Positions 4,602-44,035 of a stretch of 64,000 nucleotides of DNA are shown one piece after another. The DNA lies in the IMG/VR virus record IMGVR_UViG_3300027770_000027, positions 62,001 through 126,000 of that record; one strand, given 5' to 3'. A model generated the notes under the pieces. The model made no database searches and was not told the origin of the DNA. It saw only the letters and a list, made by a program, of their open reading frames with translations. Both the position numbers and the translations under genes were made by a program. Each line of letters opens with the position of its first letter. The first letter of the stretch is position 1.

Positions 4602-4814
4602 CTATTCACCGGAGATGGTCTCCTTAATATGTTTCTGTACCGCATCAAACAATTCAGTAACCAACCCGCTGATGTTTTCTTCTATCCTATAAGCCTTAAG
4701 GATGGATCTAAAAGTATCTTTCAAGGTAGCATCTTCCTTAGCATCTGGATTAGCTTCTTCCTTTAAGAGTTGTTCATAGATAGATTCTAATTGTAATTGT
4801 TCGCGGTCTTCCAT
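4602..4814 (-). CDS. small late protein with N-terminal targeting-like peptide (MEDREQLQLESIYEQLLKE)
   Basis: ATAAATA box immediately upstream. Confidence 0.75.
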   Translation of the reverse strand: MEDREQLQLESIYEQLLKEEANPDAKEDATLKDTFRSILKAYRIEENISGLVTELFDAVQKHIKETISGE

Positions 4815-4926
4815 AATCTTTATTTATCAATTCATTTATTTTAAAGTACGAGATAACTTCGTTAATAGCGCGGTATTAAAGGGTATTTTATTAGTTTCTT
4901 CTAGAAAAACCTAAAATAGAATTCCC

Positions 4927-4994
4927 TTTTTCTCACTTTTTGAGCCCTTTTTTGCGATTTTTGTCCCCTTTTTCTCAATTTTTGAAAGGTTTTT
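4927..4994. other. phased T5-6 tracts (intrinsically curved DNA)
   Basis: Tracts start at 4927, 4937, 4948, 4958, 4969, 4979 and 4990, a 10.5-bp period. Confidence 0.9.
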
Positions 4995-5011
4995 GCTATT
5001 AAAGTTAGTGT

Positions 5012-5197
5012 TTAATCCTGTTTATGCAGCAAAAAATGGTAGATATTCTTTATTTGATTTTCGAGATCTTTGACCTTTTCCTCTAGATCTTTAATCCTAT
5101 TCCTAGAGTCTTCAATCAATGCATCCCTAGAATCTTTTATTTCATGCCCATACATTTTAGCGGTAAGAGTGGGTCCTGGATAATCGTAGTCATTCAT
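5012..5197 (-). CDS. hypothetical coiled-coil protein
   Basis: ORF track; packed operon. Confidence 0.7.
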   Translation of the reverse strand: MNDYDYPGPTLTAKMYGHEIKDSRDALIEDSRNRIKDLEEKVKDLENQIKNIYHFLLHKQD

Positions 5198-5198
5198 A

Positions 5199-5561
5199 TT
5201 AATAAGAAGGTTTTCTAAAGGTTTCCTTGCCGTTTAGATAATACACTAGCTCTTCGTCTTTTTCCAGATACTTTATGGTAAAACGATAAGGTTTATTAGG
5301 CTTAAATGTAATCCCATCTACCTGATGCCTCGGCATACTATTAGTACAGACCTCGCCATCGTACTGATGCAATAGCTTCTCATCATCTTCAATGTCTGAA
5401 AGATATAGATCATTTCCGCAAGAGAACTCCATATCAAAGGCTTGTTCAATATGTTCTACTGAACCACAGGCCTTATACAATTCATTGTAGTCAGACTCTT
5501 GATCTTCAGTCAAAGGAAACATTAAATATACATCAAATACTGTGTTACTCATATCTTTCAT
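5199..5561 (-). CDS. hypothetical acidic protein
   Basis: ORF track; packed operon. Confidence 0.75.
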   Translation of the reverse strand: MKDMSNTVFDVYLMFPLTEDQESDYNELYKACGSVEHIEQAFDMEFSCGNDLYLSDIEDDEKLLHQYDGEVCTNSMPRHQVDGITFKPNKPYRFTIKYLEKDEELVYYLNGKETFRKPSY

Positions 5562-5572
5562 ATTTACTCATA

Positions 5573-5758
5573 TTAGACAAGTTTCACTGCCAGTTGAGTG
5601 TCGTAAGGGCCTTCCTTCTTACCATTATAGACAATGTACTCGTTCTGGTAGGCTTCTTGGATTTCATAAGTGCCTTCTTCATTTGTGGCAACAACAATAA
5701 GGTCTCCGTGCTTAGCTTTAAGTGCTTCCAGCTTTTCAATTAGTTCTGAGATCTTCAT
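5573..5758 (-). CDS. hypothetical protein (MKISELIEKLE..HGDL.V type)
   Basis: N-terminus typical of small phage proteins. Confidence 0.75.
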   Translation of the reverse strand: MKISELIEKLEALKAKHGDLIVVATNEEGTYEIQEAYQNEYIVYNGKKEGPYDTQLAVKLV

Positions 5759-5788
5759 ATTAGTATACTTCCTTTGATGTGTTTCGTA

Positions 5789-6016
5789 CTAGTCAACAAG
5801 ATCCACTTGAATGCTAATCCCGTTGAATGTGGCTCCGATTCCTTTGTATTGGAATCGATCATCTGCAATACACTTCAAGGCTTCTTCCACTGCTCCAGCC
5901 GTACGAAGATCAACCGTATCATGTAGTTTACTATACGTACAATTCACCATCATACGACCATCTACACCCCAGGTCCGAACGATCCGCAGCTTCTGTTTCG
6001 ATTTGATCTTCATCAT
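5789..6016 (-). CDS. hypothetical protein (start revised to MMKIK)
   Basis: TTCCCC promoter with leaderless ATGATG. Confidence 0.75.
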   Translation of the reverse strand: MMKIKSKQKLRIVRTWGVDGRMMVNCTYSKLHDTVDLRTAGAVEEALKCIADDRFQYKGIGATFNGISIQVDLVD

Positions 6017-6035
6017 GTATATATTATGTAGGAGG

Positions 6036-6257
6036 TTAGGGGGAAGGTCCACCTGGTTGTCGGCTTTCTAAGACCTCATGGGTTGCAACCTGGCGAATCA
6101 ATTCAATATGCCTATCTGGGTAATCATAACAAGTAAACTTGTAAGAGTTACGAGCAGGCTGCTCATCTTTGAATTCACCCCAACACCAGAACTCTCCATT
6201 GTTATCTCTATAGCCCACTAGATAGGTATATTGATTATCACCGGTTCTCATATCCAT
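6036..6257 (-). CDS. small paralogous-family protein
   Basis: YxxLVGYRD..W...F.DE..A...I.LIR pattern. Confidence 0.7.
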   Translation of the reverse strand: MDMRTGDNQYTYLVGYRDNNGEFWCWGEFKDEQPARNSYKFTCYDYPDRHIELIRQVATHEVLESRQPGGPSP

Positions 6258-6679
6258 TCAGACTTAATAGTTACTTCTCTTTTGACGATTCGATATGTAT
6301 CACAATAAGGTCTACCAGAGTATTCGGCAATGTAATCATAGGCCTCTTTCAAGGTGTCTAGATTATACCTACGAACATTCCATTCATCTTTCTTTTCCCA
6401 GTCTTGAACTTCAATGTCATAAGAGATTCTAGTAGTGGTTTCCGCTGGCTTAGTATTGTTCTTACGAAAACAAAAAGACCTTTTATGTTCAATCACCTGA
6501 GCATCTAGGATCAAAGGGTCTTTGAAAAGTTCTTTAATGGCTATAGAAACATCATCTACATTATGATACTCTGAGGTCCTGTCGTAATCATCAGTTTGAG
6601 TATAGACCTCTACAGCATCTCGCTTTTTATTAGTCTTAGTGACCTCAATGGTATATACAGTTTTATTTAGGTATGCCAT
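6248..6679 (-). CDS. small paralogous-family protein, apparently two tandem domains
   Basis: YTIEV... and YDIEV...W...EA...YRIVKREV. Confidence 0.75.
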   Translation of the reverse strand: MAYLNKTVYTIEVTKTNKKRDAVEVYTQTDDYDRTSEYHNVDDVSIAIKELFKDPLILDAQVIEHKRSFCFRKNNTKPAETTTRISYDIEVQDWEKKDEWNVRRYNLDTLKEAYDYIAEYSGRPYCDTYRIVKREVTIKSEWI

Positions 6680-6685
6680 ATTAAT

Positions 6686-6886
6686 TTAATCCTTTGCTCT
6701 CGCACCATATATGGTATCATATCCACTATCATATCCAATCTGATAACCAGCTTCGAATCCTTCATTCAAAGCTTCCTTAGCAATCTGCCTGAATAGCTCT
6801 CGATGGTGCTCATAAGACATAGCTTTGTGTTTAGTCTCTAGTACTTTGTTAATGATCTTGTCAATGGCTTCGTATTCTTCTTCCAT
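6686..6886 (-). CDS. hypothetical protein
   Basis: GFEAGYQIGYDSGY repeats. Confidence 0.7.
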   Translation of the reverse strand: MEEEYEAIDKIINKVLETKHKAMSYEHHRELFRQIAKEALNEGFEAGYQIGYDSGYDTIYGARAKD

Positions 6887-6887
6887 A

Positions 6888-7106
6888 TTAGTAAGGGTAA
6901 CTTGATTCTACTCCATCTTGACGCCAAAAGCTAGCTAATTCATCAAAGAAGTCTTGTTCTTTGTAACTGGTATCCCAATAGAATTCAGCACCATAAGGAC
7001 TTTTGCCTTTAATGATCCACTTTTCTAATGAAGTGTAGTATTGTACCTCAAAAGTATAAGCTGCGGCAACATGCAATAAGGTTTGGGAAGGAGGATTGGA
7101 GGTCAT
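6888..7106 (-). CDS. hypothetical protein
   Basis: ORF track. Confidence 0.65.
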   Translation of the reverse strand: MTSNPPSQTLLHVAAAYTFEVQYYTSLEKWIIKGKSPYGAEFYWDTSYKEQDFFDELASFWRQDGVESSYPY

Positions 7107-7150
7107 AATAGAATAAACAGAGAGGAAAGACCTGTATTAACACACTTGTA

Positions 7151-7477
7151 TTAGTGGTTCAATTCCAAGCTATCAACAACGTCTTGGATGGTTTCATAAT
7201 CTTCTTCGGAGATCTCATTCTTAAAATGGGTCTTAGCGATCTCTACCCAATTAACCGCATTGAGATAATCTCCAACAGCTTGATACGCCAAAGACCCCTG
7301 TTTAAGGTCTGCGAACTCCAACTCTTCCACTAGCTGCTCAAAGGCATCTGCCATATGCTCTACATCATCGAACTCCTGGTCTTCTGCCATTGACGCGAAG
7401 ATCTCCTCATACATGAGGTTGATGTTCCAGGTCTGCTTGTTCGTCCAGCCGTTGTATGTCGTATCGTTTCTCATCAT
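7151..7477 (-). CDS. conserved phage hypothetical protein (YNGWTN..TW motif)
   Basis: Motif common in phage and mobile-element proteins; TTCCCC promoter. Confidence 0.8.
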   Translation of the reverse strand: MMRNDTTYNGWTNKQTWNINLMYEEIFASMAEDQEFDDVEHMADAFEQLVEELEFADLKQGSLAYQAVGDYLNAVNWVEIAKTHFKNEISEEDYETIQDVVDSLELNH

Positions 7478-7515
7478 GTAAATATCTTATAGGAAGAAAG
7501 GGGGAACCACACGCC

Positions 7516-7926
7516 TTACAGACTGCCGACATGCAGGACCTTGTCATCCTGGGAAAATTCAAAGCCGTGGCTGTAGTAACCGTTATGTACATTCCATAGA
7601 TGAAGGAATTGTTCCTGATCTCCCTTAATCATACGAAAGACTGCCCGGTTGTCATCATCGTAGTAATCATCAATGCTAGTCGAAAGCTTTTCAAAGAACG
7701 CAGGATCAAAGGTCCAACCTTCGAGTAGTTGATTAACATCTTTACCATCCTGGATGGTGTCATTAAACAAATGATCGTGAAGGTCGGTAGTAACCTTGTC
7801 ACTAACATACCAACCAAAGCTCTCACAGCAGCTAGCTGAGAAATCATATCCGACAAGAACATTGTTCTCGTCTACGAAGTTAATCTTAGAACCCCAGCTA
7901 TCAGGATCTGCATGGAAATAACGCAT
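7516..7926 (-). CDS. conserved phage hypothetical protein (CCE...HNGYYSH motif)
   Basis: Motif recognition. Confidence 0.8.
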   Translation of the reverse strand: MRYFHADPDSWGSKINFVDENNVLVGYDFSASCCESFGWYVSDKVTTDLHDHLFNDTIQDGKDVNQLLEGWTFDPAFFEKLSTSIDDYYDDDNRAVFRMIKGDQEQFLHLWNVHNGYYSHGFEFSQDDKVLHVGSL

Positions 7927-7974
7927 AGTTGTATTGTATAGAGGTCGTGTGGTTGTATTGTTTAGAGGTAAGAC

Positions 7975-8340
7975 TTACCGCTCCATGGAAGACATGAAAC
8001 GATCTTCGAAATCATTCATGTAGAGGAACTCTGGGTCATTCACCGGAGCATCAAAGGTTGGTTCAAACTTCCCGGCACTTTCAGGAAACTTAGCTTCTCC
8101 TGCCACTTTCCCGTTAATCAAGATACGGACACAACGAAGCTCGTTCGGGTGGCAGACATATTGCCGGGAGTTATTAACAACCCAATCCATCTCCCGCTTG
8201 AGGTCTTGCAGAGCACTGGCTCGGGTCATTCCCACGACCGAATAGATCGTATTCCAATGAATTACTCCAGTATCAGTGAAGACCTGGATCTGAAGGCGAC
8301 CGACGACTGTTTCTTCTGCGAATGATTGTGTTTCCATCAT
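7975..8340 (-). CDS. hypothetical protein
   Basis: Leaderless MM start behind a TTCCCC promoter. Confidence 0.8.
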   Translation of the reverse strand: MMETQSFAEETVVGRLQIQVFTDTGVIHWNTIYSVVGMTRASALQDLKREMDWVVNNSRQYVCHPNELRCVRILINGKVAGEAKFPESAGKFEPTFDAPVNDPEFLYMNDFEDRFMSSMER

Positions 8341-8382
8341 GTATATATCTTAGACGAGGTTGTGGGGAACCGCAAGGACTAC

Positions 8383-8601
8383 TTAAAGGACCACCTGCTC
8401 TGGCTCACTGGCCTGACACACTAGCTCGAGCACCTCCTCCATGTAGGAGACTCCTGCGGCGAAGTTCGCGCGGCCACGGTTGTCGGAGACGTACTGGAGG
8501 ATCACCTGGACTGCTTCAGCCACTGAGACGTGGTTGGCCTTGAGGATCTCTGCGGCGGCGGACTTGGCTGCTTCGGACTGGATGTATTCGTTCTTCATCA
8601 T
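8383..8601 (-). CDS. hypothetical protein
   Basis: MMKN start, own promoter, GC-rich codons. Confidence 0.8.
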   Translation of the reverse strand: MMKNEYIQSEAAKSAAAEILKANHVSVAEAVQVILQYVSDNRGRANFAAGVSYMEEVLELVCQASEPEQVVL

Positions 8602-8643
8602 GTTTATATCTTAGAGGAGGTAATGGGGAAACTCAACGCTTAC

Positions 8644-8904: not shown

Positions 8905-8913
8905 GTATATATC

Positions 8914-9135
8914 TTAGACGAGGTTGTGGGGAAACGCAAGGGCTTCTGCCTTCTCAAGTGCTTCTTCTCCATCCATTCCCAGCTTCTCGATCTGCTCGAT
9001 CGTGGCGTTGGCTGCTTCACAAGCGGACCTGCGGAGCTTTGCGGCTTCATCCCCCCAAACACCGTCCAGGTCGAAAGCCTGTTGGAGTTGCAAGGTGAGC
9101 TGCTCAAGGAGAATGTCGATCGTGTTTTTCATCAT
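8914..9135 (-). CDS. hypothetical protein
   Basis: MMKN start; C-terminus runs through the next promoter. Confidence 0.8.
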   Translation of the reverse strand: MMKNTIDILLEQLTLQLQQAFDLDGVWGDEAAKLRRSACEAANATIEQIEKLGMDGEEALEKAEALAFPHNLV

Positions 9136-9144
9136 GTAATAATC

Positions 9145-9716: not shown

Positions 9717-9717
9717 A

Positions 9718-10303: not shown

Positions 10304-10849
10304 TCACTGTTGAACGCCGTAGAGACTCGCGAGCAAGGACTCGGCTTTATTCAAAGCACCTGGAATACTTGTCTTGTCTACTTTCAATTCTTTAGATGGC
10401 ATAATACCAAATGAATCATAAGCTCTGATGAGTATATGACTTGAGTTATGTATTAAAGTAACTGTGTTGGTAATGTCAGTTAATTGAGCAGTACGACCCT
10501 TGTTTGGATGTTCTGGATCTAATACCTTATGAGTGCTAAGAAAGATACGAGTCCAATCATAACCTTGTTTGCTTAAATCTTTAATCACTTGCGGGGCTTC
10601 CATCAATAGATCTTGAAGGTTTCCATTCTTTAGGTCTTTACTAATAGACTTCTCTCTAGACCAATCTTCTTCACCAAAAACCAAACCATGTATAGAACCA
10701 AAGAACTCTGCTCTAGTAGATAGGTATTGAAACATCTTTGCCAGGACTTCAGGGTCTCTATTAACCTTTGCCTTATTAACGCTCAAAGCATTGGACTCTA
10801 GGACCTTTGCGTAGGCCTGTTCTAATAAAATGGAGTCTTTGGTTCTCAT
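10304..10849 (-). CDS. putative internal virion protein with MRTKDSILLEQAY leader
   Basis: Shared N-terminal peptide; late operon. Confidence 0.8.
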   Translation of the reverse strand: MRTKDSILLEQAYAKVLESNALSVNKAKVNRDPEVLAKMFQYLSTRAEFFGSIHGLVFGEEDWSREKSISKDLKNGNLQDLLMEAPQVIKDLSKQGYDWTRIFLSTHKVLDPEHPNKGRTAQLTDITNTVTLIHNSSHILIRAYDSFGIMPSKELKVDKTSIPGALNKAESLLASLYGVQQ

Positions 10850-10853
10850 ATGA

Positions 10854-11408
10854 TTAACGTTTCATTCCACCGATTCTAAAGCTTTGTCCAGCTTTTGCAT
10901 GAACTTCTGCAGGGGAGTCTTCCAGGAAACGAACACTAACTGTGGTGCCTTGATTTACATTATAGTCCTGACCTTTAATGGTTAAAATTAAATTACCGTT
11001 CTTTGTGTAATCTTGATCTCCGGAAGATCTCTTAACATCCTGAATAACGCCTTGAGCAAATACTCCATCCTCTAATTCAAACTTTGTATGAGCAACACTA
11101 CCACCAGATCCAGGCACTGTAGCACTACCATCATCACGACCATAACCAGAGGTTTGTTTATGACCAGTGACTCTAGACAAAGACACTTCTTTACCAACCA
11201 GGGTCTTTAGTTTAGCAAAGGCATTATCCTTTTCAAAAGATGGGAGCATATTGAATCTAGGAATAAGATTATTAGCTTCGTCTTCAGATATAGGAGCTTG
11301 TTGATCCTTGAAATGCATTGCATCAATCTCTTTAGCTCTCCTGGAACTAATCCCTTCTTGGACAGTTTCATAGGCTTGCTCAAGTAAAATAGTGTCTTTA
11401 GTTCTCAT
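10854..11408 (-). CDS. putative internal virion protein with MRTKDTILLEQAY leader (start revised)
   Basis: ATAAATA 9 nt upstream of the ATG at 11408. Confidence 0.8.
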   Translation of the reverse strand: MRTKDTILLEQAYETVQEGISSRRAKEIDAMHFKDQQAPISEDEANNLIPRFNMLPSFEKDNAFAKLKTLVGKEVSLSRVTGHKQTSGYGRDDGSATVPGSGGSVAHTKFELEDGVFAQGVIQDVKRSSGDQDYTKNGNLILTIKGQDYNVNQGTTVSVRFLEDSPAEVHAKAGQSFRIGGMKR

Positions 11409-11419
11409 TGTTATATTAT

Positions 11420-11770
11420 TTATTCTCCTTGTTCGTCTTCTTCTGTAGGATGAGACATATAATCCCACTTATCCCAGCTACTCATTTCAGGTTCTTCTTC
11501 TTCATCTTGATCATTGCTTTGATCCTTAGCTTTAATGAGAGCGGCTAGTTGAACTGCTAACTTGGCAATCTCTGGGTCCATTACTCTTTGATGCCCGTAT
11601 TGACCCCAATGAGCTAGTTCATCCAATACAGCTTCCATACTATGAGGAAGAGTCCCACTTGGTTTATTTGGATTTGCTAGGATATCTTTAGCCTCTTTCT
11701 CTGGATTGAATTCCATGACAAGCTTATAAGCTTCATGTATATTGGTTAATTCTTTACTCGGGAGTCTCAT
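11420..11770 (-). CDS. putative internal virion protein (MRLPSKELTNIHEAYKLVME)
   Basis: ATAAATA upstream; variant leader; acidic tail. Confidence 0.75.
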   Translation of the reverse strand: MRLPSKELTNIHEAYKLVMEFNPEKEAKDILANPNKPSGTLPHSMEAVLDELAHWGQYGHQRVMDPEIAKLAVQLAALIKAKDQSNDQDEEEEPEMSSWDKWDYMSHPTEEDEQGE

Positions 11771-13911: not shown

Positions 13912-14673
13912 CTACACGGCAGATTTGCTCAATTCAAACTCAACCTGGTAACTACTCCTGAAGACATCTAAATCCCATTGAGGTCCTAATTTGTTCTTTA
14001 GTTGTTGAGCTAATCTTTTGTATAAAGTAACTTTGCCGTGATCAGAAGACTTAGCTGAGAATCCAATGATGGTATACTTCTTAGAGTTCTTAGACAAATA
14101 TTCATTCACTATCTTCAACACAGTGGCCATAACTCTAAATGCTTTACCAGTGCCAGTCATGTCTGCGGTGCCTTGAATATTCTTATCCTCATCTGTATAA
14201 TGGAACATAATAGTTAACCTTTGAGGATATTCCGGATCTTCTAATGTCAGTACGGTGTATAAAACTTTTGGGTTATTAGGATCAGGGAAGAATATAAAAC
14301 CCCCATCCCTTTCAGACCATTGGTATGGATAGGGATTATCCATAGATTCTTCTACTACACTTTCAGGTACACAGTTAGGTACTTGTTTACCATTCTTGGT
14401 CTTAGTGCCTATTGGTTTATAACCATCCCAACAGGTGTTTTTCATTCTCTTTTTTTCTTCCAGATACTCTGAGAATGTAGGAATGGTTGCTTCTGTATGA
14501 GAATGATACTTGGCTAACCGTTTCTTTAACATCTTAACCCAACCAATGTTATTAGTACGTTTAGCCTCTTTCATATCCTTATGAGCTGCTGCAGCTTTGT
14601 GAGACCAGAACTGTTTTTTATCTGTGTTGGATTCTTTCTTGCCCGGCTTAGCTTTCTTGGATATATCACTCAT
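13912..14673 (-). CDS. modular late protein with CWDGY...KVPNCVP motif (start revised to MSDISK)
   Basis: ATAAATA upstream of 14673; internal IPTFSEYLEE and VVEES. Confidence 0.8.
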   Translation of the reverse strand: MSDISKKAKPGKKESNTDKKQFWSHKAAAAHKDMKEAKRTNNIGWVKMLKKRLAKYHSHTEATIPTFSEYLEEKKRMKNTCWDGYKPIGTKTKNGKQVPNCVPESVVEESMDNPYPYQWSERDGGFIFFPDPNNPKVLYTVLTLEDPEYPQRLTIMFHYTDEDKNIQGTADMTGTGKAFRVMATVLKIVNEYLSKNSKKYTIIGFSAKSSDHGKVTLYKRLAQQLKNKLGPQWDLDVFRSSYQVEFELSKSAV

Positions 14674-31449: not shown

Positions 31450-31614
31450 TTAGAAACCCTTAGCGGCTGCTGTGTTCTTTTTAGACTTTTTACAAGCCGG
31501 ACATGTACATTTTTCATTTTTACATTTCTTACCCACTGTGCAAGGGCAAGGTGTTTTGGCTTCGTGAACAATTTGATAAGCTTGTTCTAATAGAATAGTG
31601 TCTTTGGTTCTCAT
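31450..31614 (-). CDS. MRTKDTILLEQAY-leader peptide with Cys/Lys-rich metallothionein-like body (start revised)
   Basis: CPC..C...CTC..C in the C-terminal 35 aa. Confidence 0.75.
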   Translation of the reverse strand: MRTKDTILLEQAYQIVHEAKTPCPCTVGKKCKNEKCTCPACKKSKKNTAAAKGF

Positions 31615-31798: not shown

Positions 31799-31822
31799 AT
31801 GATATACTTACCCTAAAAGGGG

Positions 31823-31903
31823 TACGGACGGAGAGACTCGAACTCTCATGCCTTTCGGCGCCAGTTCCTAAGACTGGAGTGTCTGCCATTCCACCACGTC
31901 CGC
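31823..31903 (-). tRNA. trnL: tRNA-Leu(TAG)
   Basis: Cloverleaf, CCAGT-CTTAGGA-ACTGG, long V-arm, no encoded CCA. Confidence 0.95.
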
Positions 31904-31925
31904 TTTTATGTATTTATCCAGAAAA

Positions 31926-32016
31926 TGGTACACCGGGTGGGAATTGAACCCACACCTAGGAGTTATCTACTCAGTACGTGTATAAGACGTCTTGCTCTAC
32001 CGTGAGCTACCGGTGC
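31926..32016 (-). tRNA. tRNA with TAT anticodon (Ile?) and long variable arm
   Basis: ACGT-CTTATAC-ACGT; V-arm GAGT..ACTC; canonical T-arm; ACCA end. Confidence 0.8.
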
Positions 32017-32036
32017 CTGTTGGGTTAAGTATTGTT

Positions 32037-32411
32037 ATGATTAGATTGGTTAAAGCTATCGGAGAAAAATTAAAAGGCAAGCCATTGGCAATGAGATCTC
32101 CTCATTGGGCAACTACTAGACGTCATCACTTAAAAGATCATTCTACATGTGCAGCTTGTGGTGGTACAGAAAAATTACAAGTACACCACAAACAGCCTTA
32201 TCATCTACATCCAGATTTAGAATTGGAACCTACTAATTTGATTACCTTGTGTGAATTTGGAGATATTGATTGTCATTATAATATAGGTCATCATAGAGAC
32301 TGGAAATCTTTTAATCCAAATGTAGTACAAGATGCTGCCGCCAACCTAACAATTATTAACGAAAAGAAAGTGCGCCCGGTTGGGATTGAACCAACGACCA
32401 AGGAATTATGA
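32037..32411 (+). CDS. HNH endonuclease (start revised to MIRLVK)
   Basis: CAACG..L.VHH...NLITLC....CH; TAAGTA box upstream. Confidence 0.9.
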   Translation: MIRLVKAIGEKLKGKPLAMRSPHWATTRRHHLKDHSTCAACGGTEKLQVHHKQPYHLHPDLELEPTNLITLCEFGDIDCHYNIGHHRDWKSFNPNVVQDAAANLTIINEKKVRPVGIEPTTKEL

Positions 32412-32443
32412 GTTCCCTGCTCTGACCACTGAGCTACAGGCGC
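32371..32443 (-). tRNA. tRNA-CAT, probably Ile2 (lysidine type)
   Basis: GGGAA-CTCATAA-TTCCT; body resembles bacterial tRNA-Ile2. Confidence 0.85.
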
Positions 32444-32484
32444 TTATGATAAAATTATAATATATCGTAAGAGGGAAATCAACC

Positions 32485-32668
32485 AGGATGATGTGTTTTT
32501 CTCGCGAGTGTCTGTCACATCGTTCAACGGCCGACCAGCTTGAGCCAATCCATTACCGTCTAAGACCAGTGTTTAAGAAACACCCCTTTCACTAGGGTGT
32601 ACAGCTAGAGGTACTAACTTCAAACTGGACTAACTCTCTCTAGGTTGTCCGGCTAAGCCGGCTCGGAT
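32485..32668 (-). ncRNA. candidate structured RNA of about 185 nt
   Basis: ORF-free and GC-rich; several hairpins with G-U pairs on the minus strand; ATAAATA upstream. Confidence 0.55.
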
Positions 32669-32669
32669 T

Positions 32670-32900
32670 CTATTTATCTAGTTGTTCTACAATATCTTCT
32701 TCTGAAAAAAGACCAGTAGGAGTAAACCCCAAATCTGCTTCAAGTTCTTCAAATCTATAAAGAAATCCTTTAGAGAGATCTTGCTCATCACTATCTTCTT
32801 CAATCTCTCCGGTATACAGACCTTCTCCTCGATATGAGGCGTCTGGCCACTTAGGATCTACATAGTCAATATAATAACGTTTACCGGTTACTGGAATCAT
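32670..32900 (-). CDS. hypothetical acidic protein
   Basis: ORF track. Confidence 0.75.
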   Translation of the reverse strand: MIPVTGKRYYIDYVDPKWPDASYRGEGLYTGEIEEDSDEQDLSKGFLYRFEELEADLGFTPTGLFSEEDIVEQLDK

Positions 32901-32935
32901 ATTTATATATTATAAGAACATTTAAAATATATCAA

Positions 32936-33202
32936 CTATGCTTTGGGTTTTCTTTTAAGAAACTCTGAAACAACTTTGTCTGCTGCTTTGAATTCTGTTG
33001 TATGATTAGCAACTGGCTCGATGTAACGATCCCAAAAGACTTCTGTATCAGGTTCACTACCGAACCTATTCTTGTAATCTACAACAAGAAAGCAACCTTC
33101 CTTTATGTTCACTCTAAACGCCTTCGTTTCTGGACCATCATATACACATTCAGTGCGGACATCCAACAATTGCTTACCTGAAGTTTGAGTTTGCTTTGTC
33201 AT
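32936..33202 (-). CDS. hypothetical protein
   Basis: ORF track. Confidence 0.7.
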   Translation of the reverse strand: MTKQTQTSGKQLLDVRTECVYDGPETKAFRVNIKEGCFLVVDYKNRFGSEPDTEVFWDRYIEPVANHTTEFKAADKVVSEFLKRKPKA

Positions 33203-33226
33203 GTTTAATACTTATAGAAAATAAAT

Positions 33227-33313
33227 CCAACGGCGCTCATGTCTCTGTCTCCCAACCACGGGACACACCAGAGAAATTATACATGGGTCGATGGTATAAT
33301 GAGATTCCGTTGG
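33227..33313 (-). ncRNA. candidate three-way-junction RNA
   Basis: CCAACGG/CCGTTGG and CTCAT/ATGAG closing stem with two inner hairpins. Confidence 0.55.
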
Positions 33314-33432
33314 CCACCAGAAGAGCTCACCGGGTCTTATATGTTACTGGTTAGATAACTTTTGTCCCTTTAAGTGATTTTTTTAAGTGAATCAACACCG
33401 GATCTTGTTTTAAGTGAAAGCCAACACTAAGC

Positions 33433-33532
33433 TTTTCCAGGTTGGATTCGAACCAACGGCGAGCGCTTTGTCCCGGCATTTTGGCCCTTAACCATGAGGG
33501 AGCACTAGATCTACCAACTGAGTTACTGGAAA
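33433..33532 (-). ncRNA. tRNA-like RNA with expanded, anticodon-less arm
   Basis: Perfect acceptor stem and T-arm GTTGG-TTCGAAT-CCAAC; extra hairpin replaces the anticodon loop. Confidence 0.75.
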
Positions 33533-33536
33533 ATTA

Positions 33537-33634
33537 TGGAGACTAGGTTGGTCATTTCATCCAACATCCTGTACTGGTTCCTCAGAGTTTTATACTTAAA
33601 CTACTAGTCATTTGAAATTAAAGTGTCTAGTCTC
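33537..33634 (-). ncRNA. candidate structured RNA ending in CCA
   Basis: GAGACTAG/CTAGTCTC closing stem; motif shared with 34991-35029. Confidence 0.5.
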
Positions 33635-33641
33635 TCCCAGT

Positions 33642-33708
33642 GTCACACAACTACTTTACCAGATTAATCCGGTTACTCACTCCACATTGTGTAGAGGGCA
33701 TGTGTCGC
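33642..33708 (-). ncRNA. candidate small three-way-junction RNA
   Basis: CTCTACA/TGTGGAG and ACCGGA/TCTGGT hairpins within an ACACA/TGTGT stem. Confidence 0.45.
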
Positions 33709-33715
33709 AAAAAAA

Positions 33716-33803
33716 TGGTCGCCTAGGCCGGACTCGAACCGGCACGAGGAGTGCTCCTCGACAGATTTTAAGTCTGTTGTGTCTGCCATTTCACCACTAG
33801 GCG
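33716..33803 (-). tRNA. trnL: tRNA-Leu(TAA)
   Basis: Cloverleaf, long V-arm, CCA. Confidence 0.95.
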
Positions 33804-33806
33804 TGT

Positions 33807-33818
33807 CTATCAAAGATC
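33807..33818 (-). promoter_or_regulatory. boxA-like element GATCTTTGATAG
   Basis: Just downstream of a TTCCC promoter; identical copy at 35052-35063. Confidence 0.6.
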
Positions 33819-33871
33819 ATTTATTATGTTAATATCTTAACATCACTTACTGGGAAGGTCACCTGGGAAAT

Positions 33872-33945
33872 TGGTAGTCCGCCCAGGGCTCGAACCTGGA
33901 ATAAGAGATTCAAAATCTCCTGTGTTACCATTACACCAACGGACT
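33872..33945 (-). tRNA. trnQ: tRNA-Gln(TTG)
   Basis: Cloverleaf, CCA. Confidence 0.95.
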
Positions 33946-33948
33946 ATA

Positions 33949-34024
33949 TGGTCGTGATGGAGAGACTCGAACTCTCGATACCTTGGTCCCAAACCAAGTG
34001 CCATAGCCGCTAGGCGACATCACG
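33949..34024 (-). tRNA. trnP: tRNA-Pro(TGG)
   Basis: Cloverleaf, CCA. Confidence 0.95.
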
Positions 34025-34035
34025 TTATCTAAAAA

Positions 34036-34109
34036 TGGTTGACCATGAAGGTAACGCTCCTTCGTCCTTCGATTATCAGTCGAGAGCTCTACTTTTAAGC
34101 TAATGGTCA
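34036..34109 (-). tRNA. trnI: tRNA-Ile(GAT) with non-canonical D- and T-loops
   Basis: T-loop AGCGTTA, D-loop AAAAGTA; CCA. Confidence 0.85.
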
Positions 34110-34112
34110 ATA

Positions 34113-34187
34113 TGGAGCCAACAGTCGGGATTGAACCGACGACCGGTGGTTTACAAAACCACTGCTCTACCACTGAGCTATGCTGGC
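34113..34187 (-). tRNA. trnT: tRNA-Thr(TGT)
   Basis: Cloverleaf, CCA. Confidence 0.95.
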
Positions 34188-34191
34188 AATG

Positions 34192-34264
34192 TGGAGCCTA
34201 AGGGATTCGAACCCTTCACCTATAGCTTGCAAAGCTACCGCTCTACCGAATGAGCTAAGACCCC
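34192..34264 (-). tRNA. trnA: tRNA-Ala(TGC)
   Basis: G3-U70 pair; no encoded CCA. Confidence 0.95.
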
Positions 34265-34270
34265 TTAAAA

Positions 34271-34344
34271 TGGTGGACCATGAGGGTAACGCTCCCTCTT
34301 GATTCGGTTAAAAGCCGAGTGCTTTACTTTTAAGCTAATGGTCC
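34271..34344 (-). tRNA. trnK: tRNA-Lys(TTT) with non-canonical D- and T-loops
   Basis: Same scaffold as tRNA-Ile(GAT); CCA. Confidence 0.85.
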
Positions 34345-34348
34345 GAAA

Positions 34349-34424
34349 TGGTTGCACAGGTCGGATTCGAACCGACGATCTTTTGGTTATGAGCCAAATG
34401 AGTTGACCTCTTCTCTACCGTGCG
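34349..34424 (-). tRNA. initiator-type tRNA-Met(CAT)
   Basis: C1-A72 mismatch; anticodon stem has only two G-C pairs. Confidence 0.85.
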
Positions 34425-34431
34425 ATTAAAA

Positions 34432-34506
34432 TGGCTCCTGGAGTAGGACTCGAACCTACAACGTCCTCGTTAACAGCGAGGTGCTCTACCATTGAGCTAT
34501 CCAGGA
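34432..34506 (-). tRNA. trnN: tRNA-Asn(GTT)
   Basis: Cloverleaf, GCCA end. Confidence 0.95.
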
Positions 34507-37711: not shown

Positions 37712-37981
37712 ATGAAATTTAATGAACTAGTCAATTTTTTATTAGAAAAATACAGTAAACCATGTACTAAAGTAACCGGGCAACAATCTTCTACTCGAGA
37801 TGATAAAAAATATATGAGATGTGCTAAAGTAGATGGTAAACTTAAAAGAGTTCATTATGGAGACCCTAATATGAGAATTAAGAAGTCTAACCCTAAAAAC
37901 CGCAAAAGTTATAGGGCTAGACATCATTGTAGCTCAGCCAAACCAGGAACTCCCGAATATTTTAGCTGCAAGAACTGGTAA
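37712..37981 (+). CDS. small basic late protein (DUF5754/DUF6321-like) with MKFNELVNFLLE leader
   Basis: V.YGD..M....RKSYRARH.C...SC..W; TAAATA upstream. Confidence 0.8.
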   Translation: MKFNELVNFLLEKYSKPCTKVTGQQSSTRDDKKYMRCAKVDGKLKRVHYGDPNMRIKKSNPKNRKSYRARHHCSSAKPGTPEYFSCKNW

Positions 37982-39074
37982 AGGCTTTCCAATACTTGTG
38001 GGGAGAGATTTCTTTGCCATCTAGTATAGCAAATGCTATGCCACTACAATCGGAAAGATATTGCAAGATCTTTTGAGCCTTTCCCTTTCGATCTAAAGTA
38101 ACAAAATCTGGTTTGGTGAAATATATTTTAATTCTGTTAATTTCAATATTAATTTTATTCATCTTCAAATATAACTCATCCATTAAAGATTCCAGAGTTA
38201 CAACTAACTCCCAATCAAAATTAGCAGCTAACAATGCTTCAAAGTTCTCTCTTTGAGGTTGTCCATACTCTACAAATAAATCAAATAAATGATCTACGGT
38301 CTTTACACCTGTAAAGATTCGATGTAGCTGAAGATAACGAAGAGTCTTAATCTTCTTCAAGATTTGGCCACCACCATATCCAGGAGCATCATCATAAATA
38401 ACCACTCCTTCAATGTCAGCCAGTGGCTCAATGCGCTTTTTAATATCTTCAATACTACCCCCTAAACTAATACCGTAAGACTTGGGTCGTTCAACACCCA
38501 TTTCTTTTGCATAGGTGTCAAGGTTGTGTTGGTTAACATATGAATAATCTGGGTGATAAACCATTCCAATCAACCACAAGGTGGGTTCGGTAGATTCATT
38601 CAATACAATTCTATTAGTTGGTGTAGTCCACTCAAACAGTAAAGTATATAAACCACAATCCAACCATTCCAACCATTCATTATCAAAAACTTTGGGATAC
38701 TTCTTCTTGAGAAATTCAATTTCATGACCATTTTCAAGCTGAGAGGCATCAACTGTGCCTCGGGTGCGAATAATAAGTTCACCCCTGTATCTGCTAACAA
38801 TTAAACAAGACCCATCAATTTTCTGAATTGCTCTAACACCATCTTCTGGATTTAGAGGTTCAAATTCTGGCTTCTCACCATAGTTCATGAACTTCCGGAA
38901 ACCTAGAGACACTGGCATCATATCAGACTTGCGCCATATAGAAGAACGGAAGAACTTATTTTCTTCGGTCCATTCTACACCCATGTTCTTGGGGGTAACC
39001 AGAACACATTCATCCCCTGCAATGACACAATCCTTGAGGTGAAATTGGTCTGAATTGGGAAGTTCTATTTTCAT
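37962..39074 (-). CDS. RNA ligase, T4 Rnl1-like
   Basis: KF.NYGE, KIDGS (motif I), LFEW, EGVVI, KIK. Confidence 0.85.
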   Translation of the reverse strand: MKIELPNSDQFHLKDCVIAGDECVLVTPKNMGVEWTEENKFFRSSIWRKSDMMPVSLGFRKFMNYGEKPEFEPLNPEDGVRAIQKIDGSCLIVSRYRGELIIRTRGTVDASQLENGHEIEFLKKKYPKVFDNEWLEWLDCGLYTLLFEWTTPTNRIVLNESTEPTLWLIGMVYHPDYSYVNQHNLDTYAKEMGVERPKSYGISLGGSIEDIKKRIEPLADIEGVVIYDDAPGYGGGQILKKIKTLRYLQLHRIFTGVKTVDHLFDLFVEYGQPQRENFEALLAANFDWELVVTLESLMDELYLKMNKINIEINRIKIYFTKPDFVTLDRKGKAQKILQYLSDCSGIAFAILDGKEISPHKYWKAFTSSCS

Positions 39075-39775: not shown

Positions 39776-39806
39776 ACTACCATATTAGTATAGAAAGAAG
39801 AGAAAA

Positions 39807-40178
39807 TCACTTCTGTTTGTGATTTTTGTTTGTAGGGGTAATTCTAGACCTTGATTTTTGTTTGGGGTTTGATCTTTTTAAAGCAGCCGCTTTTTTAATT
39901 TCTTGAAATTGTTCCCATTGCCACCAGGATAACCAAAAAAACGTCAAAGACATACCCACATTCAATAAAATCTCTGTGATATTGGGAGTTGATATTGTTA
40001 ATACATTTGTAATGGCTCCACATGTAGTGACAGTTAAACCAAATTTAGCTAGATAGGCTTTAATTTTATTATCCCATATTTTATTATCCGGATCACCAAA
40101 AATATGAATAAGAAGTGCTAGAGAGGAAAATGCTATAGTACAATTGGAGATAATATTGATAATTGAGTATATAGACAT
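39807..40178 (-). CDS. three-TM membrane protein (holin-like)
   Basis: TM segments with a basic tail. Confidence 0.6.
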   Translation of the reverse strand: MSIYSIINIISNCTIAFSSLALLIHIFGDPDNKIWDNKIKAYLAKFGLTVTTCGAITNVLTISTPNITEILLNVGMSLTFFWLSWWQWEQFQEIKKAAALKRSNPKQKSRSRITPTNKNHKQK

Positions 40179-40183
40179 ATAAT

Positions 40184-40534
40184 TTATTTATGTCGACGGA
40201 CTCTTCTTGTCGGTTTTGTTACTGGTTTTGTTTCAGGTTCAAGAATATGGTCCGGTAATATTTTGCTGCTGAAATATTCTATACCTTTGAGCCCCAAAAA
40301 TCCTAATAAAAAAGCTATTCCATAATGATAATGGCTCTCATCTAACTTAGTTAAATTAATAACAATTGGTGTTATATAGTTAGCACTAGCTGCGCCTCCA
40401 ACTAAACAAGAAATGGTTCTAGTCAGATTCATGGCGGAACCTTTAGAGGTTAAAAGAATTGCTCCGAACAGACCACTGATCAACAATCCAATGTCTATAC
40501 CATATTCCTTCAAATTAACTTGTGGAGCCTCCAT
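40184..40534 (-). CDS. putative holin
   Basis: Three TM segments, AFLLGFLG, basic C-terminus; TAAGTA upstream. Confidence 0.6.
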   Translation of the reverse strand: MEAPQVNLKEYGIDIGLLISGLFGAILLTSKGSAMNLTRTISCLVGGAASANYITPIVINLTKLDESHYHYGIAFLLGFLGLKGIEYFSSKILPDHILEPETKPVTKPTRRVRRHK

Positions 40535-40568
40535 GAAGATACTTACACCACAAGCTGGGTCTTTGTCT

Positions 40569-41042
40569 TTAAAGACCTCTGTGTATACAATAGTAGATAT
40601 TAGACCAATCCGGAGGCATGGATAGATCCCACCGTTGAATCATCTTATCTATAACGTGTTGAGGCACATTGTGGATATTTTTACGAAAACCTTCAACAAC
40701 TGGAATTTCACTCATTTCATGAATTTCAATTTTAGCCCCTAATTCTCTGGCCATTTTAACATAGGGCTCCATTTCTTTGATGGTGCTGAAAGTGTTAGAC
40801 ACATACACCTTACCACCATTTGTTAAGGCTTCTCGAGTTCTAAATAGACACATTTCATGTGCTTCTTTTAAACGAGAGGCATCAAAGCGATATTCAAATT
40901 GACGAGACAAACTATTATGAACTTCAAAATACATATCTGCCTCAAAATGATAGCTGTATTCTACATTATCTGTCTGTCGCTGGTTGTTTACGAAAGTAGT
41001 CTTTCCGGAACCGGGAATACCACGAACAAGAATTAATTTCAT
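40569..41042 (-). CDS. AAA_33 P-loop kinase (polynucleotide-kinase-like)
   Basis: RGIPGSGKTT, EADMYF, VSNTF, HNVP. Confidence 0.85.
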   Translation of the reverse strand: MKLILVRGIPGSGKTTFVNNQRQTDNVEYSYHFEADMYFEVHNSLSRQFEYRFDASRLKEAHEMCLFRTREALTNGGKVYVSNTFSTIKEMEPYVKMARELGAKIEIHEMSEIPVVEGFRKNIHNVPQHVIDKMIQRWDLSMPPDWSNIYYCIHRGL

Positions 41043-41197
41043 AATATTATTTTATATCAGTCCTCAAAGAAAGACCCGACAATTCTGAAATTGTGTGTAA
41101 AAGATTTCCCAGACCACAATCACAAGAGTCTGTGGTTACACTATCACTAGTACATTCCTTATCATGTTCTACATAAGACAATAATACTAGAAGTAAA

Positions 41198-42466
41198 CTA
41201 TTGATTGAATCCGAAACCAACTTTTCGTTTGGGTTTGTGCCCTTCTTCATTGTTTGAGTATTGTTTTTCATGATTAAAAATATCAGCTAATGTCATATCA
41301 TCTTCTACAAGGATATCATGCCCTAAATTATTCATAAGAATTTGAGATTTTTCTTTACTAAGTTTGTGAAATCTATATTCAGACTTTAATCTTCCCTTTC
41401 GCAACAAGGCGGGATCAATCAAATTACGATCACAATTATAGGTTGCTATAATGGCTGATTTTGTCAAATCCGCATATAAACCATCTGTAAGATTTAATAC
41501 ACTAGACACTAAGGTTGAATTAGAAAATCCATCACCTTCCTCTCTTTTCATCAAAGCCTTTTCAGCATCTTCCAAAACTAATACACATCCCTTATGGTCT
41601 CTGGTAAGAATATCTGTAAATTCTGGTGAAGACAAAGAATGGATCATCTGAGGAGGTATAAAAATAAATTCTCTATCCACAACAGACAACAAATGTCGAA
41701 TAGCAGATGACTTACCTGTACCAGGTTCTCCGTGCATTAAGTAAAGCCCTGCCTGTTCATCTGATAATTGATCTTGGAGATTATTTAAATATCCCTCAAA
41801 ATCATCGTTATAATAACCACTGTCATAAACATTAGAATTGTCTAATTCCATTTTTCCAACATATGGTCCATATTTGTTTTGTTTAATGATACCAATGCTG
41901 GCTTTCTCTGGTTTGTCTGCCAATTTGTATTTTAAAATTTCTTCTATAATTGGAGGGGTGTCAATATTAGACCAAGTCCAAATACTACCAAGTACTGGAG
42001 TATCGCTAAATGATCCCGCACCTCCTGGAATATAATGACCAACTGCATGATGACAAACATGCACTACATGTTTCTTATATAAGAAATAATAATTGATCTG
42101 TGTGTCTTCTGTGTCAGTACTTCCCCATTCTGTACATTTACGAACCATTAAAGTTCCATTTACAAATAGGTCCTGAATAAATCGCTCATCATAATATCCG
42201 GGATATCCTACTTCACTTGGAATAGTTTTTGCATACTTACTCCATATATCAAATCCAAGATCTATATAACCATCCGTACGATGGTCCAATTCTGTATCTG
42301 TCAATATAAGTTTATCTGTATAAATTAAAGCCTTAGAAACGGCTTCAATACCTCGGACAGTTCTACCAACTTTTTCAAACTTTCTCTTTTTTGAGACAGT
42401 TTTTCTACCAGTTGAAAATTCAATGGTATCAGATCGATCAAAAAGTCTGTCTAAAATATCACTCAT
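41198..42466 (-). CDS. AAA+ ATPase
   Basis: GEPGTGKS, LEDAE, LN.TDG, DPALLRKGR. Confidence 0.9.
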   Translation of the reverse strand: MSDILDRLFDRSDTIEFSTGRKTVSKKRKFEKVGRTVRGIEAVSKALIYTDKLILTDTELDHRTDGYIDLGFDIWSKYAKTIPSEVGYPGYYDERFIQDLFVNGTLMVRKCTEWGSTDTEDTQINYYFLYKKHVVHVCHHAVGHYIPGGAGSFSDTPVLGSIWTWSNIDTPPIIEEILKYKLADKPEKASIGIIKQNKYGPYVGKMELDNSNVYDSGYYNDDFEGYLNNLQDQLSDEQAGLYLMHGEPGTGKSSAIRHLLSVVDREFIFIPPQMIHSLSSPEFTDILTRDHKGCVLVLEDAEKALMKREEGDGFSNSTLVSSVLNLTDGLYADLTKSAIIATYNCDRNLIDPALLRKGRLKSEYRFHKLSKEKSQILMNNLGHDILVEDDMTLADIFNHEKQYSNNEEGHKPKRKVGFGFNQ

Positions 42467-42509
42467 ATTGGAAAAATTATTATAATTCTTTTTTAATTAT
42501 TAATCAACG

Positions 42510-43547
42510 TTAGTCTTTGTAATTTTGATTAATAATTTTTACACTTAACATCTTATTGAGAGTTTCGCTGTATCTCAAATCTCCATTTAAATTATAACCT
42601 CGAATAACAATACCTTCTGCGGGTTTACCATTTTTAACATAAGTCATTTCATTGGCCAGAGTTTGTAATTTTTCTAACGTCAAATTTGGGATTTCGCTTG
42701 CTGTAAAAGATTCTACAAATGGTACAGAAAGACACATATGTGAAAAATCTGATTTCATTACATCTTGAGCTTCTTTATATACTCCAGTTGACAAGTCTTT
42801 TACATTAAAATGAAAGAAAGAAAGCTGCTGAAGGCCAGCTGGATTTCCTTGAATACCTGGTCCACAAATTTCTCCCTGCACTGCGGTGCCTAGTGGTAGA
42901 TAACTTTCAATTTGATATTTCTTAGCCATTTGCCAGTAAACACTGTCTGGTGTCTCCCTTAGCTCTAAGTTACGAGAACATACTTTAAAGTTTCCTTCGT
43001 GATCTTTGATGTAAGTAACAGAAGTCCCATCCATCTTGAGGGTAACACGGACAAACGCAGATGCTTTTAATTCTTCCAATACTTTAATATTAGACAAAAG
43101 GTTGTCTTCATCTGTTCTGCTTATGAATTGAGTAGGAAAATTACCAGCTACTTCCCCTCGTAAATTAGCTGGGATGGGTTTTTCGTATTTGGTAATACCT
43201 AACATCCCTGCAATAGAGGTGTCTTCTTCTGGATCATCTGAATGGTCCCAGATTTCTTGAGCACTAATTAGAGATCTAGGAAAAATAAGTCCTTGAGAAA
43301 CCGTACCTCGAAGCTTAACGGTTTTTACTCGAATAGGTTTGGTAGGATCATTCTTATCCCACAGAAATTCATTCCATACTCTCGGCTGGAGTACGGTATC
43401 AATAGGTACAAAAATTACTCCATCTCCTACCTTATATTCTCCCTTTTTGATAACGCTCTGCCACCCCTGCACTCGAGCAATCTCAATACGGTCTGCTCCT
43501 TCGATAGGAAGGATTTCTGTGATGGTTTCATATGACGCAAGTTCCAT
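42510..43547 (-). CDS. RNA ligase, DRB0094 family with N-terminal OB domain
   Basis: PIEGADRIE, SQGL, KMDGTS, QGE..GPGIQGN, EGIVI, K.IN. Confidence 0.9.
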   Translation of the reverse strand: MELASYETITEILPIEGADRIEIARVQGWQSVIKKGEYKVGDGVIFVPIDTVLQPRVWNEFLWDKNDPTKPIRVKTVKLRGTVSQGLIFPRSLISAQEIWDHSDDPEEDTSIAGMLGITKYEKPIPANLRGEVAGNFPTQFISRTDEDNLLSNIKVLEELKASAFVRVTLKMDGTSVTYIKDHEGNFKVCSRNLELRETPDSVYWQMAKKYQIESYLPLGTAVQGEICGPGIQGNPAGLQQLSFFHFNVKDLSTGVYKEAQDVMKSDFSHMCLSVPFVESFTASEIPNLTLEKLQTLANEMTYVKNGKPAEGIVIRGYNLNGDLRYSETLNKMLSVKIINQNYKD

Positions 43548-43585
43548 GTTACAAGATTAATATGGATACCGGGGAAGGGCAACAA

Positions 43586-43617
43586 AAAACCCTCTTGGAT
43601 TTTGCCAAGAGGGTTTT
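43586..43617. terminator. intrinsic terminator
   Basis: AAAACCCTCTTGG-N6-CCAAGAGGGTTTT. Confidence 0.85.
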
Positions 43618-43642
43618 GTTTTTTGTGCTTCTATAGGAATTG

Positions 43643-44035
43643 TTACATTGGAGGAAACTCTTCGCCGTCAGTTTCTCCTTCACCGGTTTCACTATCTACG
43701 GGAAATTCTTCACCACCAGCTTCTCCTTCTCCTTGATCTTGAGGTAATCTTTCTTGTAAACTACCAACAGCTGCCTGCACTGCTGATACAGCTGCAATCA
43801 ATCCTTGAAATTCTTCACTCATATCACCTTGTTCAAAGGTACCTATTAGAGGTTGGATGGTTTCTAGATGTGCTGCAGTTGCGTTTAAATCTTCTGTGAT
43901 GGCTTTGATTAGAGTTTTTTCAACTGCTAACGCCTTGGCGTCTTCTCCTGCTACTTGGCTTTCTGGACCAGCGGCGCGGGACTCTAGGACCATTCTATAG
44001 GATTTTTCTAATTGGATTGAATCTTTGTCTCTCAT
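43643..44035 (-). CDS. putative internal virion protein (MRDKDSIQLEKSYRMVLES leader)
   Basis: ATAAATA upstream; acidic tail. Confidence 0.8.
   Translation of the reverse strand: MRDKDSIQLEKSYRMVLESRAAGPESQVAGEDAKALAVEKTLIKAITEDLNATAAHLETIQPLIGTFEQGDMSEEFQGLIAAVSAVQAAVGSLQERLPQDQGEGEAGGEEFPVDSETGEGETDGEEFPPM

Follow-up and report, generated by a model that had tools for sequence, protein, structure and literature searches.

The internal proteins IPI, IPII and IPIII of the T-even phages carry a short leader, the capsid-targeting sequence (CTS), which was described by Mullaney and Black and has been covered by several reviews (PMC9026906, PMC3012670, PMC12373910). In T4 IPIII, the first 10 residues suffice for packaging, with residues 4 and 7 mainly responsible for targeting and residues 8 and 10 for processing, and the protease gp21 cuts after L/I-x-E (PMC9026906). 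As read from the T4 genome (NC_000866), IPII and IPIII start with MKTYQEFIAE followed by A, and IPI starts with MKTFKEFTSTTTPVSTITE followed by A. In T4 the leader-tagged proteins enter the host together with the DNA, and each of the three inhibits Type IV restriction enzymes; about ten internal proteins (Ips) have been reported for the T-evens (PMC12373910). Here we describe an N-terminal tag shared by four proteins with unrelated bodies, encoded in a stretch of 64,000 nucleotides of IMG/VR virus record IMGVR_UViG_3300027770_000027. This stretch, called the window below, has a G+C content of 38% and comprises positions 62,001-126,000 of contig Ga0209086_10000004 (227,352 bp, freshwater-type metagenome). 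We consider that the tag is probably the capsid-targeting sequence of a deep-branching, uncultured T4-like lineage, analogous to that of T4 and different from it in sequence.

All four tagged genes lie on the minus strand, and in each of them the tag begins at the ATG of the gene. Two form a tandem pair, headed by a gene for 184 amino acids (10854..11408; tag at 11355-11408, ending V-Q-E before G; 41.1 bits against the hidden Markov model (HMM) of the tag). The second gene of the pair codes for 181 amino acids (10304..10849), its tag occupies codons 1-18 (10796-10849) and ends V-L-E before S, and it is the best match to the HMM of the two (44.8 bits, E 5e-13). Since its start is only 4 nt past the stop of the gene at 11408, both are probably co-transcribed. 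The third gene codes for 54 amino acids (31450..31614; tag at 31561-31614, ending V-H-E before A; 43.5 bits), and the fourth for 130 amino acids (43643..44035), starting with MRDKDSIQLEKSY..VLE before S (34.5 bits, E 9e-10), which is the most divergent of the four copies. A six-frame motif scan combined with extraction of open reading frames (ORFs) gave the pattern M-R-[T/D]-K-D-[S/T]-I-x-L-E-[Q/K]-[A/S]-Y-x-x-V-x-E for the four starts. An earlier note on this DNA had quoted these leaders, and scan and ORFs give the first 18 residues exactly as quoted. When the tag profile was run against all 1794 stop-to-stop segments of the six frames of the window, the four copies scored E values from 5e-13 to 9e-10, and the next-best match had E = 0.05.

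Behind the tag, BLASTP at 1e-3 detected no similarity among the four bodies, in agreement with the earlier claim that they are unrelated, and none of the four proteins had a match in Pfam or PHROG. The 181-aa protein is an ORFan with a predicted alpha/beta domain in its body; a Foldseek search of its AlphaFold model, which is of moderate quality (predicted local distance difference test score, pLDDT, 66), found nothing in the PDB at E<=0.001. Orthologues of the 11408 gene are present in the related loci L020, L030 and L039. The cargo of the 31614 gene is rich in Cys and Lys, with a Lys-rich tail, and could bind metal or DNA, by analogy with the basic internal proteins of T4, while that of the 44035 gene is acidic. 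Cys/Lys-rich cargo behind the tag was also seen in the tagged proteins P0049, P0066, P0088, P0116 and P0150.

The tag is by no means confined to the window. In IMG/VR and in JGI metagenomes, scans with degenerate DNA patterns found it on further unrelated proteins in related contigs, where 34 tagged ORFs fell into 24 body families by BLASTP. A profile built from 32 tags was then used against 1.84 billion representative proteins, with a cut-off of E<=0.001, and matched 241 protein clusters. The details that follow come from the 150 listed of these 241 clusters, 148 of which could be registered. Of the 150, 147 match the profile from residue 1 onward and the remaining three from residues 2, 7 and 11, apparently owing to start-codon calls. 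The 148 representatives, 46-520 amino acids long (median 132), comprise 114 body families unrelated by BLASTP, nearly all of them ORFans. Their consensus is M-[K/R]-[N/T/S/D]-K-D-[Q/T]-I-L-L-E-[Q/N/E]-A-Y-x-[K/S/Q]-[I/V]-[L/Y], with Q, T or S at residue 6; L9 and E10 are invariant, and K4, D5, I7, L8, A12 and Y13 are each present in more than 90%. Two Pfam matches were obtained among the 150, one to LysM and one to Por_Secre_tail. All ten representatives that were checked are metagenomic and either nameless or annotated as "hypothetical protein". A second, internal copy of the tag occurs in P0018 (at about residue 325) and P0085 (at about residue 37); the former resembles two tandem tagged genes fused by read-through, and the latter a duplicated tag.

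Other searches returned little. The tagged region and protein had no match in 50,697 phage records by megablast and tblastn. A 22-residue tag query also found nothing in phage records, a search of low power in which 13 identical residues give E>10. Nothing useful came from Pfam and PHROGs for 18 tagged proteins or from Pfam for another 150. A word-indexed protein search with residues 1-40 retrieved only orthologues of the 181-aa protein, presumably because a match restricted to the tag misses the E-value limit in a large database, and a full-text literature search for the tag motif found no paper.

The phage that carries the tag is known from metagenome contigs alone, and we found no cultured phage close to the window. 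When 41 T4 proteins were compared by tblastn with the window and the loci then collected, only rnlA and nrdA were hit, and a search for related loci starting from T4 gp21 returned close T4 relatives only. The head genes were reached by walking outward from the window through exact-protein look-ups. Some 36 kb to the left, fibre, lysis and nucleotide-metabolism genes were found and no head genes were seen. To the right, about 40 kb of giant fibre and baseplate genes are followed by gp25, a gp44-like clamp loader and then a head module (L129) that encodes gp15, Portal_T4, gp13, a Peptidase_S77 prohead protease, core or scaffold candidates of 75 and 297 amino acids, and Gp23. The DNA of this module was read from the near-identical contig Ga0133913_10000099, which shares identical proteins of 2183 and 1932 amino acids with the window contig. 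The identical protease is present on seven contigs, one of them in the 0.2-1 Mb class and presumably the 227-kb contig of the window itself. The protease (233 amino acids, L129:6514-7212) aligns with T4 gp21 at 35% identity (E 1e-24) and keeps GELNHP and GVSSR(S/G)LG; its N-terminus has L-V-E at residues 9-11, the counterpart in T4 gp21 being L-I-E at 7-9. A-I-A-E followed by A is found both in the 297-aa scaffold candidate and in T4 gp22. The capsid protein matches T4 gp23 at 28% identity (E 4e-40), and no cultured phage has a capsid protein more than about 35% identical to it, those of T4-like cyanophages being the closest. Judged by these proteins, the phage is a deep-branching, uncultured and very distant relative of T4, and it has a head maturation machinery of T4 type, since the S77 protease, a scaffold-like gene, gp23, Portal_T4, gp13 and gp15 are all present. 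A gene for a TnsA-like endonuclease, possibly part of a mobile element, is inserted between gp13 and the prohead protease (L129:5734-6201).

The tag itself contains sites of the type that such a protease would recognise. Among the listed representatives L8 occurs in 139 of 148 and E10 in every one of the 148, which fits the prohead-protease motif L/I-x-E at residues 8-10; residue 7 is hydrophobic, and the start is M-[K/R]-T/N/S. About 70% of cargos have a second hydrophobic-x-E site, whose Glu is residue 18, 19 or 20, an enrichment of more than tenfold over the background of 1.7% per position in the bodies, and the residue after it is mostly N, A, S or G. The earlier note placed the cleavage after V-x-E at residues 16-18. 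This motif is present in the four copies of the window and, in the wider form just given, in most cargos, and fails as a general rule, E18 being present in about a third of family members; the essentially invariant L8-L9-E10 is an equally good or better candidate site. In the AlphaFold model of the 181-aa protein the tag forms a separate helix (residues 4-22), followed by a non-helical segment (23-32) and a globular alpha/beta domain. On a helical wheel drawn by eye, the tag reads as an amphipathic helix with L8, L9, A12, Y13, V16 and L17 on one face.

Upstream of the tagged genes a promoter-like box was frequent. The strict form, [G/T/A]ATAAAT[A/T] at 2-20 nt before the ATG, was found in 9 of 133 window genes, among them those at 11408, 11770 and 44035 and a structural gene at 49100. 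Tagged genes are enriched for it: within 30 nt of the ATG it was present in 15 of 33, and in 25 of the 33 when one-base variants were allowed. ATAAATA is the consensus of T4-type late promoters, and boxes of this type also precede the fibre genes, the prohead protease and the 75-aa core gene. In the window, AATAAATA stands on the minus strand at 11417..11424, 8 nt before the ATG of the 11408 gene, and at 44046..44053, 10 nt before that of the 44035 gene. The statement of the earlier note that most tagged genes follow an ATAAATA box is correct for these two and for the weak variants at 11770 and 4814, which are considered below, and incorrect for 10849 and 31614.

Taken together, these observations suggest how the tag might work. 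The tagged genes would be expressed late, along with the head genes, to judge from the common box. By analogy with T4 IPIII and gp22, the amphipathic helix of the tag would dock the cargo on the scaffolding core while the prohead assembles, and the gp23 shell would then enclose it. The position of the motif and the presence of a gp21-family protease point to a cut after the Glu of hydrophobic-x-Glu, the candidate sites being L8-L9-E10 and, in the cargos that have it, the second site at residues 18-20, so that the mature cargo would be freed inside the head. At infection the cargo would leave with the DNA and act on the host, most plausibly against its defences, like Ip1-3 of T4. This is in essence the proposal of the earlier note, of a distinct capsid-loading tag that delivers injected effectors. 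It is partly supported, by the N-terminal position of the tag, the unrelated cargo, selection on the tag at protein level, the protease-type sites, the T4-like head genes and the box, and needs correction in two respects: V-x-E is not universal, and the weak variants are doubtful. A further-reaching claim would be that the tag is a second, independently recognisable capsid-loading code across an uncultured T4-like branch, marking at least 241 clusters of injected proteins, whose release would depend on a cut at E10 in the middle of the helix with a back-up site at its end; in this full form we can put it forward only tentatively, and it may well be wrong.

Several observations weigh against the tag being a capsid-targeting sequence. 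No homology to the T4 tag was detectable, the N-termini of T4 ipI and ipIII being outside the 25 best HMM scores, the lowest of which was already negative. About 30% of cargos have no second site, and residue 16 is V as often as I, when gp21 of T4 prefers L or I there. For the tag helix, confidence in the model is low, with a pLDDT of about 48. Among the four window copies, 10849 and 31614 have no late box of their own, and the promoter role of this box is itself carried over from T4-type phages. Finally, residues 11-17 are as conserved as residues 1-10, which is unexpected if a cut after E10 ends the tag. Because of this the true cut site or sites are uncertain, and the same conservation suggests that docking involves all 17 residues of the helix, with a cut midway and, where possible, also at its end.

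The conservation of residues 11-17 past the putative cut, together with a helix that stands apart from the cargo domain, would also be expected if the tag were a docking helix for some other partner, such as a phage chaperone, the tail or baseplate or a shared host target, and were never cut by the head protease. We regard this as unlikely, since it leaves unexplained both the L-x-E at residues 8-10, which matches the processing determinants of T4, and the marked excess of hydrophobic-x-E sites where the tag ends; moreover, the capsid-targeting sequence is the one system of this design that has been documented among T4-type phages (PMC3012670, PMC12373910).

Even near-identical phages are unlike in how many tagged genes they have and where these lie. 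Arrays of two to five of them occur in L020, L033 and L037, and the window has either none or a different arrangement at the syntenic places; in L020, five tagged genes in a row have the same two flanks as the window gene at 4814. One window gene of 253 amino acids, preceded by a late-type box (13912-14673, minus strand), has its 108-aa N-terminal and 174-aa C-terminal parts in separate genes in L033:11165-12759 and L037:10914-13114, with one or two tagged genes between them. Tandem arrays are typical of duplication, and some bodies are related, several families among the 148 representatives having 2-7 members. These facts could be taken to mean that all tagged genes are paralogues of one fast-evolving family, in which the N-terminus is merely the last recognisable part and has no address function. 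We hold this to be improbable in view of the 114 unrelated body families, with their wide range of lengths and with compositions from Cys/Lys-rich to acidic. It also fits poorly with the orthologues of the 181-aa protein, in which residues 1-13 are nearly unchanged (T3N and S6T are the only replacements) down to the most distant one, P0004, which is 44% identical overall. Their sequences indicate that, within this orthologous family, the tag is far more tightly constrained than the cargo.

The codons of the tag were compared as well. In codons 1-13, the three closest window copies differ pairwise by four or five synonymous and at most one non-synonymous change (0-1), and the differences between 11408 and 31614 are wholly synonymous; pairs that include 44035 show two to four synonymous and four or five non-synonymous changes. 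At the nucleotide level the copies are 63-81% identical over the 54 nt of the tag, as against 18-37% over the 60 nt that flank it on each side. In codons 5-13 the third positions are free (entropy 0.65-1.74 bits) and the first and second positions fixed, and Leu and Ser/Thr codons change between codon families. The tags derived from contigs were collected with a DNA search pattern that fixed several residues by construction, a constraint from which the profile search is free; positions that the pattern left free were still conserved among them (L8 in 27 of 30, V or I at residue 16 in 28 of 30). Owing to the synonymous differences and the low identity of the flanks, conservation of the tag can be read only as protein, and the selection at protein level that the earlier note deduced from synonymous codons is thus confirmed. 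A signal in the nucleic acid, whether an initiation or regulator site on late mRNAs that may be leaderless, with a box 2-20 nt from an ATG whose first codons could then matter, or a homology patch for the exchange of cassettes, which do sit at different places in relatives, is very improbable with third positions free, Leu and Ser/Thr codon families switching and profile matches at protein level across distant contigs, and conservation as DNA or RNA was rejected on the codon evidence.

Two further genes had been named in the earlier note as weaker variants of the tag, and neither stands out from noise in the HMM search of 140 N-termini. The gene at 11420..11770 on the minus strand (116 amino acids, starting with MRLPSKELTNIHEAYKLVME) is the third gene of the tandem array with the two tagged genes at 11408 and 10849 and has a GATAAATA box 10 nt upstream; it scored 3.6 bits (E 0.35), at the top of the noise. 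The gene at 4602..4814, also on the minus strand (70 amino acids, MEDREQLQLESIYEQLLKE), scored 1.1 bits, within the noise; it is syntenic with the tagged-gene arrays of L020 and L033, its flanking genes being those that bracket arrays of two to five tagged genes in relatives. Context alone favours both as possible degenerate tags, and as copies of the tag they are statistically unsupported.

The earlier note had also stated that no tagged gene has a TTCCCC promoter, and this proved right: TTCCCC precedes none of them. It occurs at 26 other sites of the minus strand, in each case exactly 29 nt ahead of the ATG, and belongs there to a very regular cassette, nTGnnnTTCCCC-N6-TC-N3-TAnnAT-N4-ACATGAT (also TTCCCC-N23-ATG), with examples at the ATGs 2719, 2991, 8601, 8904, 9135, 12579, 13441 and 29195; the genes behind it mostly start MMK, MMR or MI. 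The mRNAs of these early-type cassettes look leaderless, because the -10-like TAnnAT is about 5-7 nt from the ATG. One cassette gene, at 8914-9135 on the minus strand, begins with MMKN and has D-I-L-L-E-Q-L right after the start, and its orthologue L033:9612-9821 has K-D-L-L-L-E-Q-L; this likeness to the tag core is not significant (HMM 2.7 bits). By eye, no Shine-Dalgarno sequence could be made out upstream of the starts inspected. The Por_Secre_tail of one tagged protein among P0005-P0154 is a sorting domain for type IX secretion and typical of Bacteroidota, so that this cargo and the apparent absence of Shine-Dalgarno sequences may hint at Bacteroidota as the host phylum.

As to the surroundings of the tagged genes, the 31614 gene is preceded by a 59-aa ORF, has no box and adjoins a block of 11 tRNA genes at 31821-34506 on the minus strand (Leu x2, Ile(tat), Met x2, Gln, Pro, Thr, Ala, Lys and Asn). 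The 44035 gene lies directly upstream of the Rnl2-like RNA ligase gene. This ligase (42510-43547), an AAA_33 kinase-like gene (40569-41042) and an rnlA-like ligase (37962-39074), all on the minus strand, are a possible RNA-repair set, with an AAA ATPase gene (41198-42466) between the kinase-like gene and the Rnl2-like ligase. The window also has gp38-type tail-fibre genes and, at 50812-56016, a gene for a 1734-aa protein with VWA and Ig domains; it is on the plus strand, opposite to nearly all other genes, and is preceded by a gene for a 566-aa ORFan with a late-type box.

If the tag is a capsid-targeting sequence, its main use would be as a search handle, which so far has been limited to the T-evens and would be extended to a deep, uncultured T4-like lineage. 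It provides a catalogue of several hundred ORFan candidates for delivery into the host at the first moment of infection, among which many possible anti-defence proteins may be sought. Should the further-reaching claim made above hold too, a 17-residue profile would by itself list the injected anti-defence arsenal of phages that have never been grown. Another possible use of the tag is for packaging in the engineering of such phages, and it offers a natural comparison for finding the essential features of a CTS, candidates for which are the N-terminal position, the amphipathic helix and hydrophobic-x-Glu at residues 8-10. To a specialist, the existence of such a tag in a T4-like phage will be unsurprising; the scale of the repertoire and the handle on injected proteins are what is noteworthy.

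Regarding other systems, we know of no common sequence tag described for the inner-body or ejection propeptides of phiKZ-type phages, and the tagged genome, with its gp23, Portal_T4, gp13 and gp15, is T4-type and not phiKZ-type. In phiKZ, 201phi2-1 and SPN3US a gp21-related protease cuts many of the proteins inside the head after Glu, and the propeptides of these giant phages can hold several redundant sites (PMC9026906); the motif there is S/A-x-E. The cargo-loading peptides of encapsulins resemble the tag in that a short conserved peptide sends unrelated cargo into an HK97-fold shell, a likeness that is one of function only. They differ from it in that they are usually C-terminal and involve neither removal by a protease nor DNA nor injection.

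The closest counterpart is the T-even CTS. In both cases a short leader starting at Met1 is common to otherwise unrelated proteins whose genes sit in variable accessory loci that differ between close relatives, and both leaders have an M-[K/R]-T start, a hydrophobic residue 7 and an x-E end at residue 10. Both phages encode a gp21-family protease, gp23 and a scaffold, in the present case a candidate, and, like ipI in T4, one tagged gene (31614) is a neighbour of the tRNA block. The tag differs from the T-even leader in that its conserved part spans 16-17 residues and not 10, in that a second site at residues 18-20 is common, and in a repertoire of at least 241 clusters as against the roughly ten Ips (PMC12373910); moreover, the phage that carries it is only 28-35% identical to T4 in gp23 and gp21. 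With the exception of homology in sequence, the defining features of the CTS that can be read from gene and protein sequences appear in the tag, and the box suggests that its genes may be expressed together with the head genes. The tag very probably is of the same functional class as the T-even leader, though by sequence it stands outside that family.

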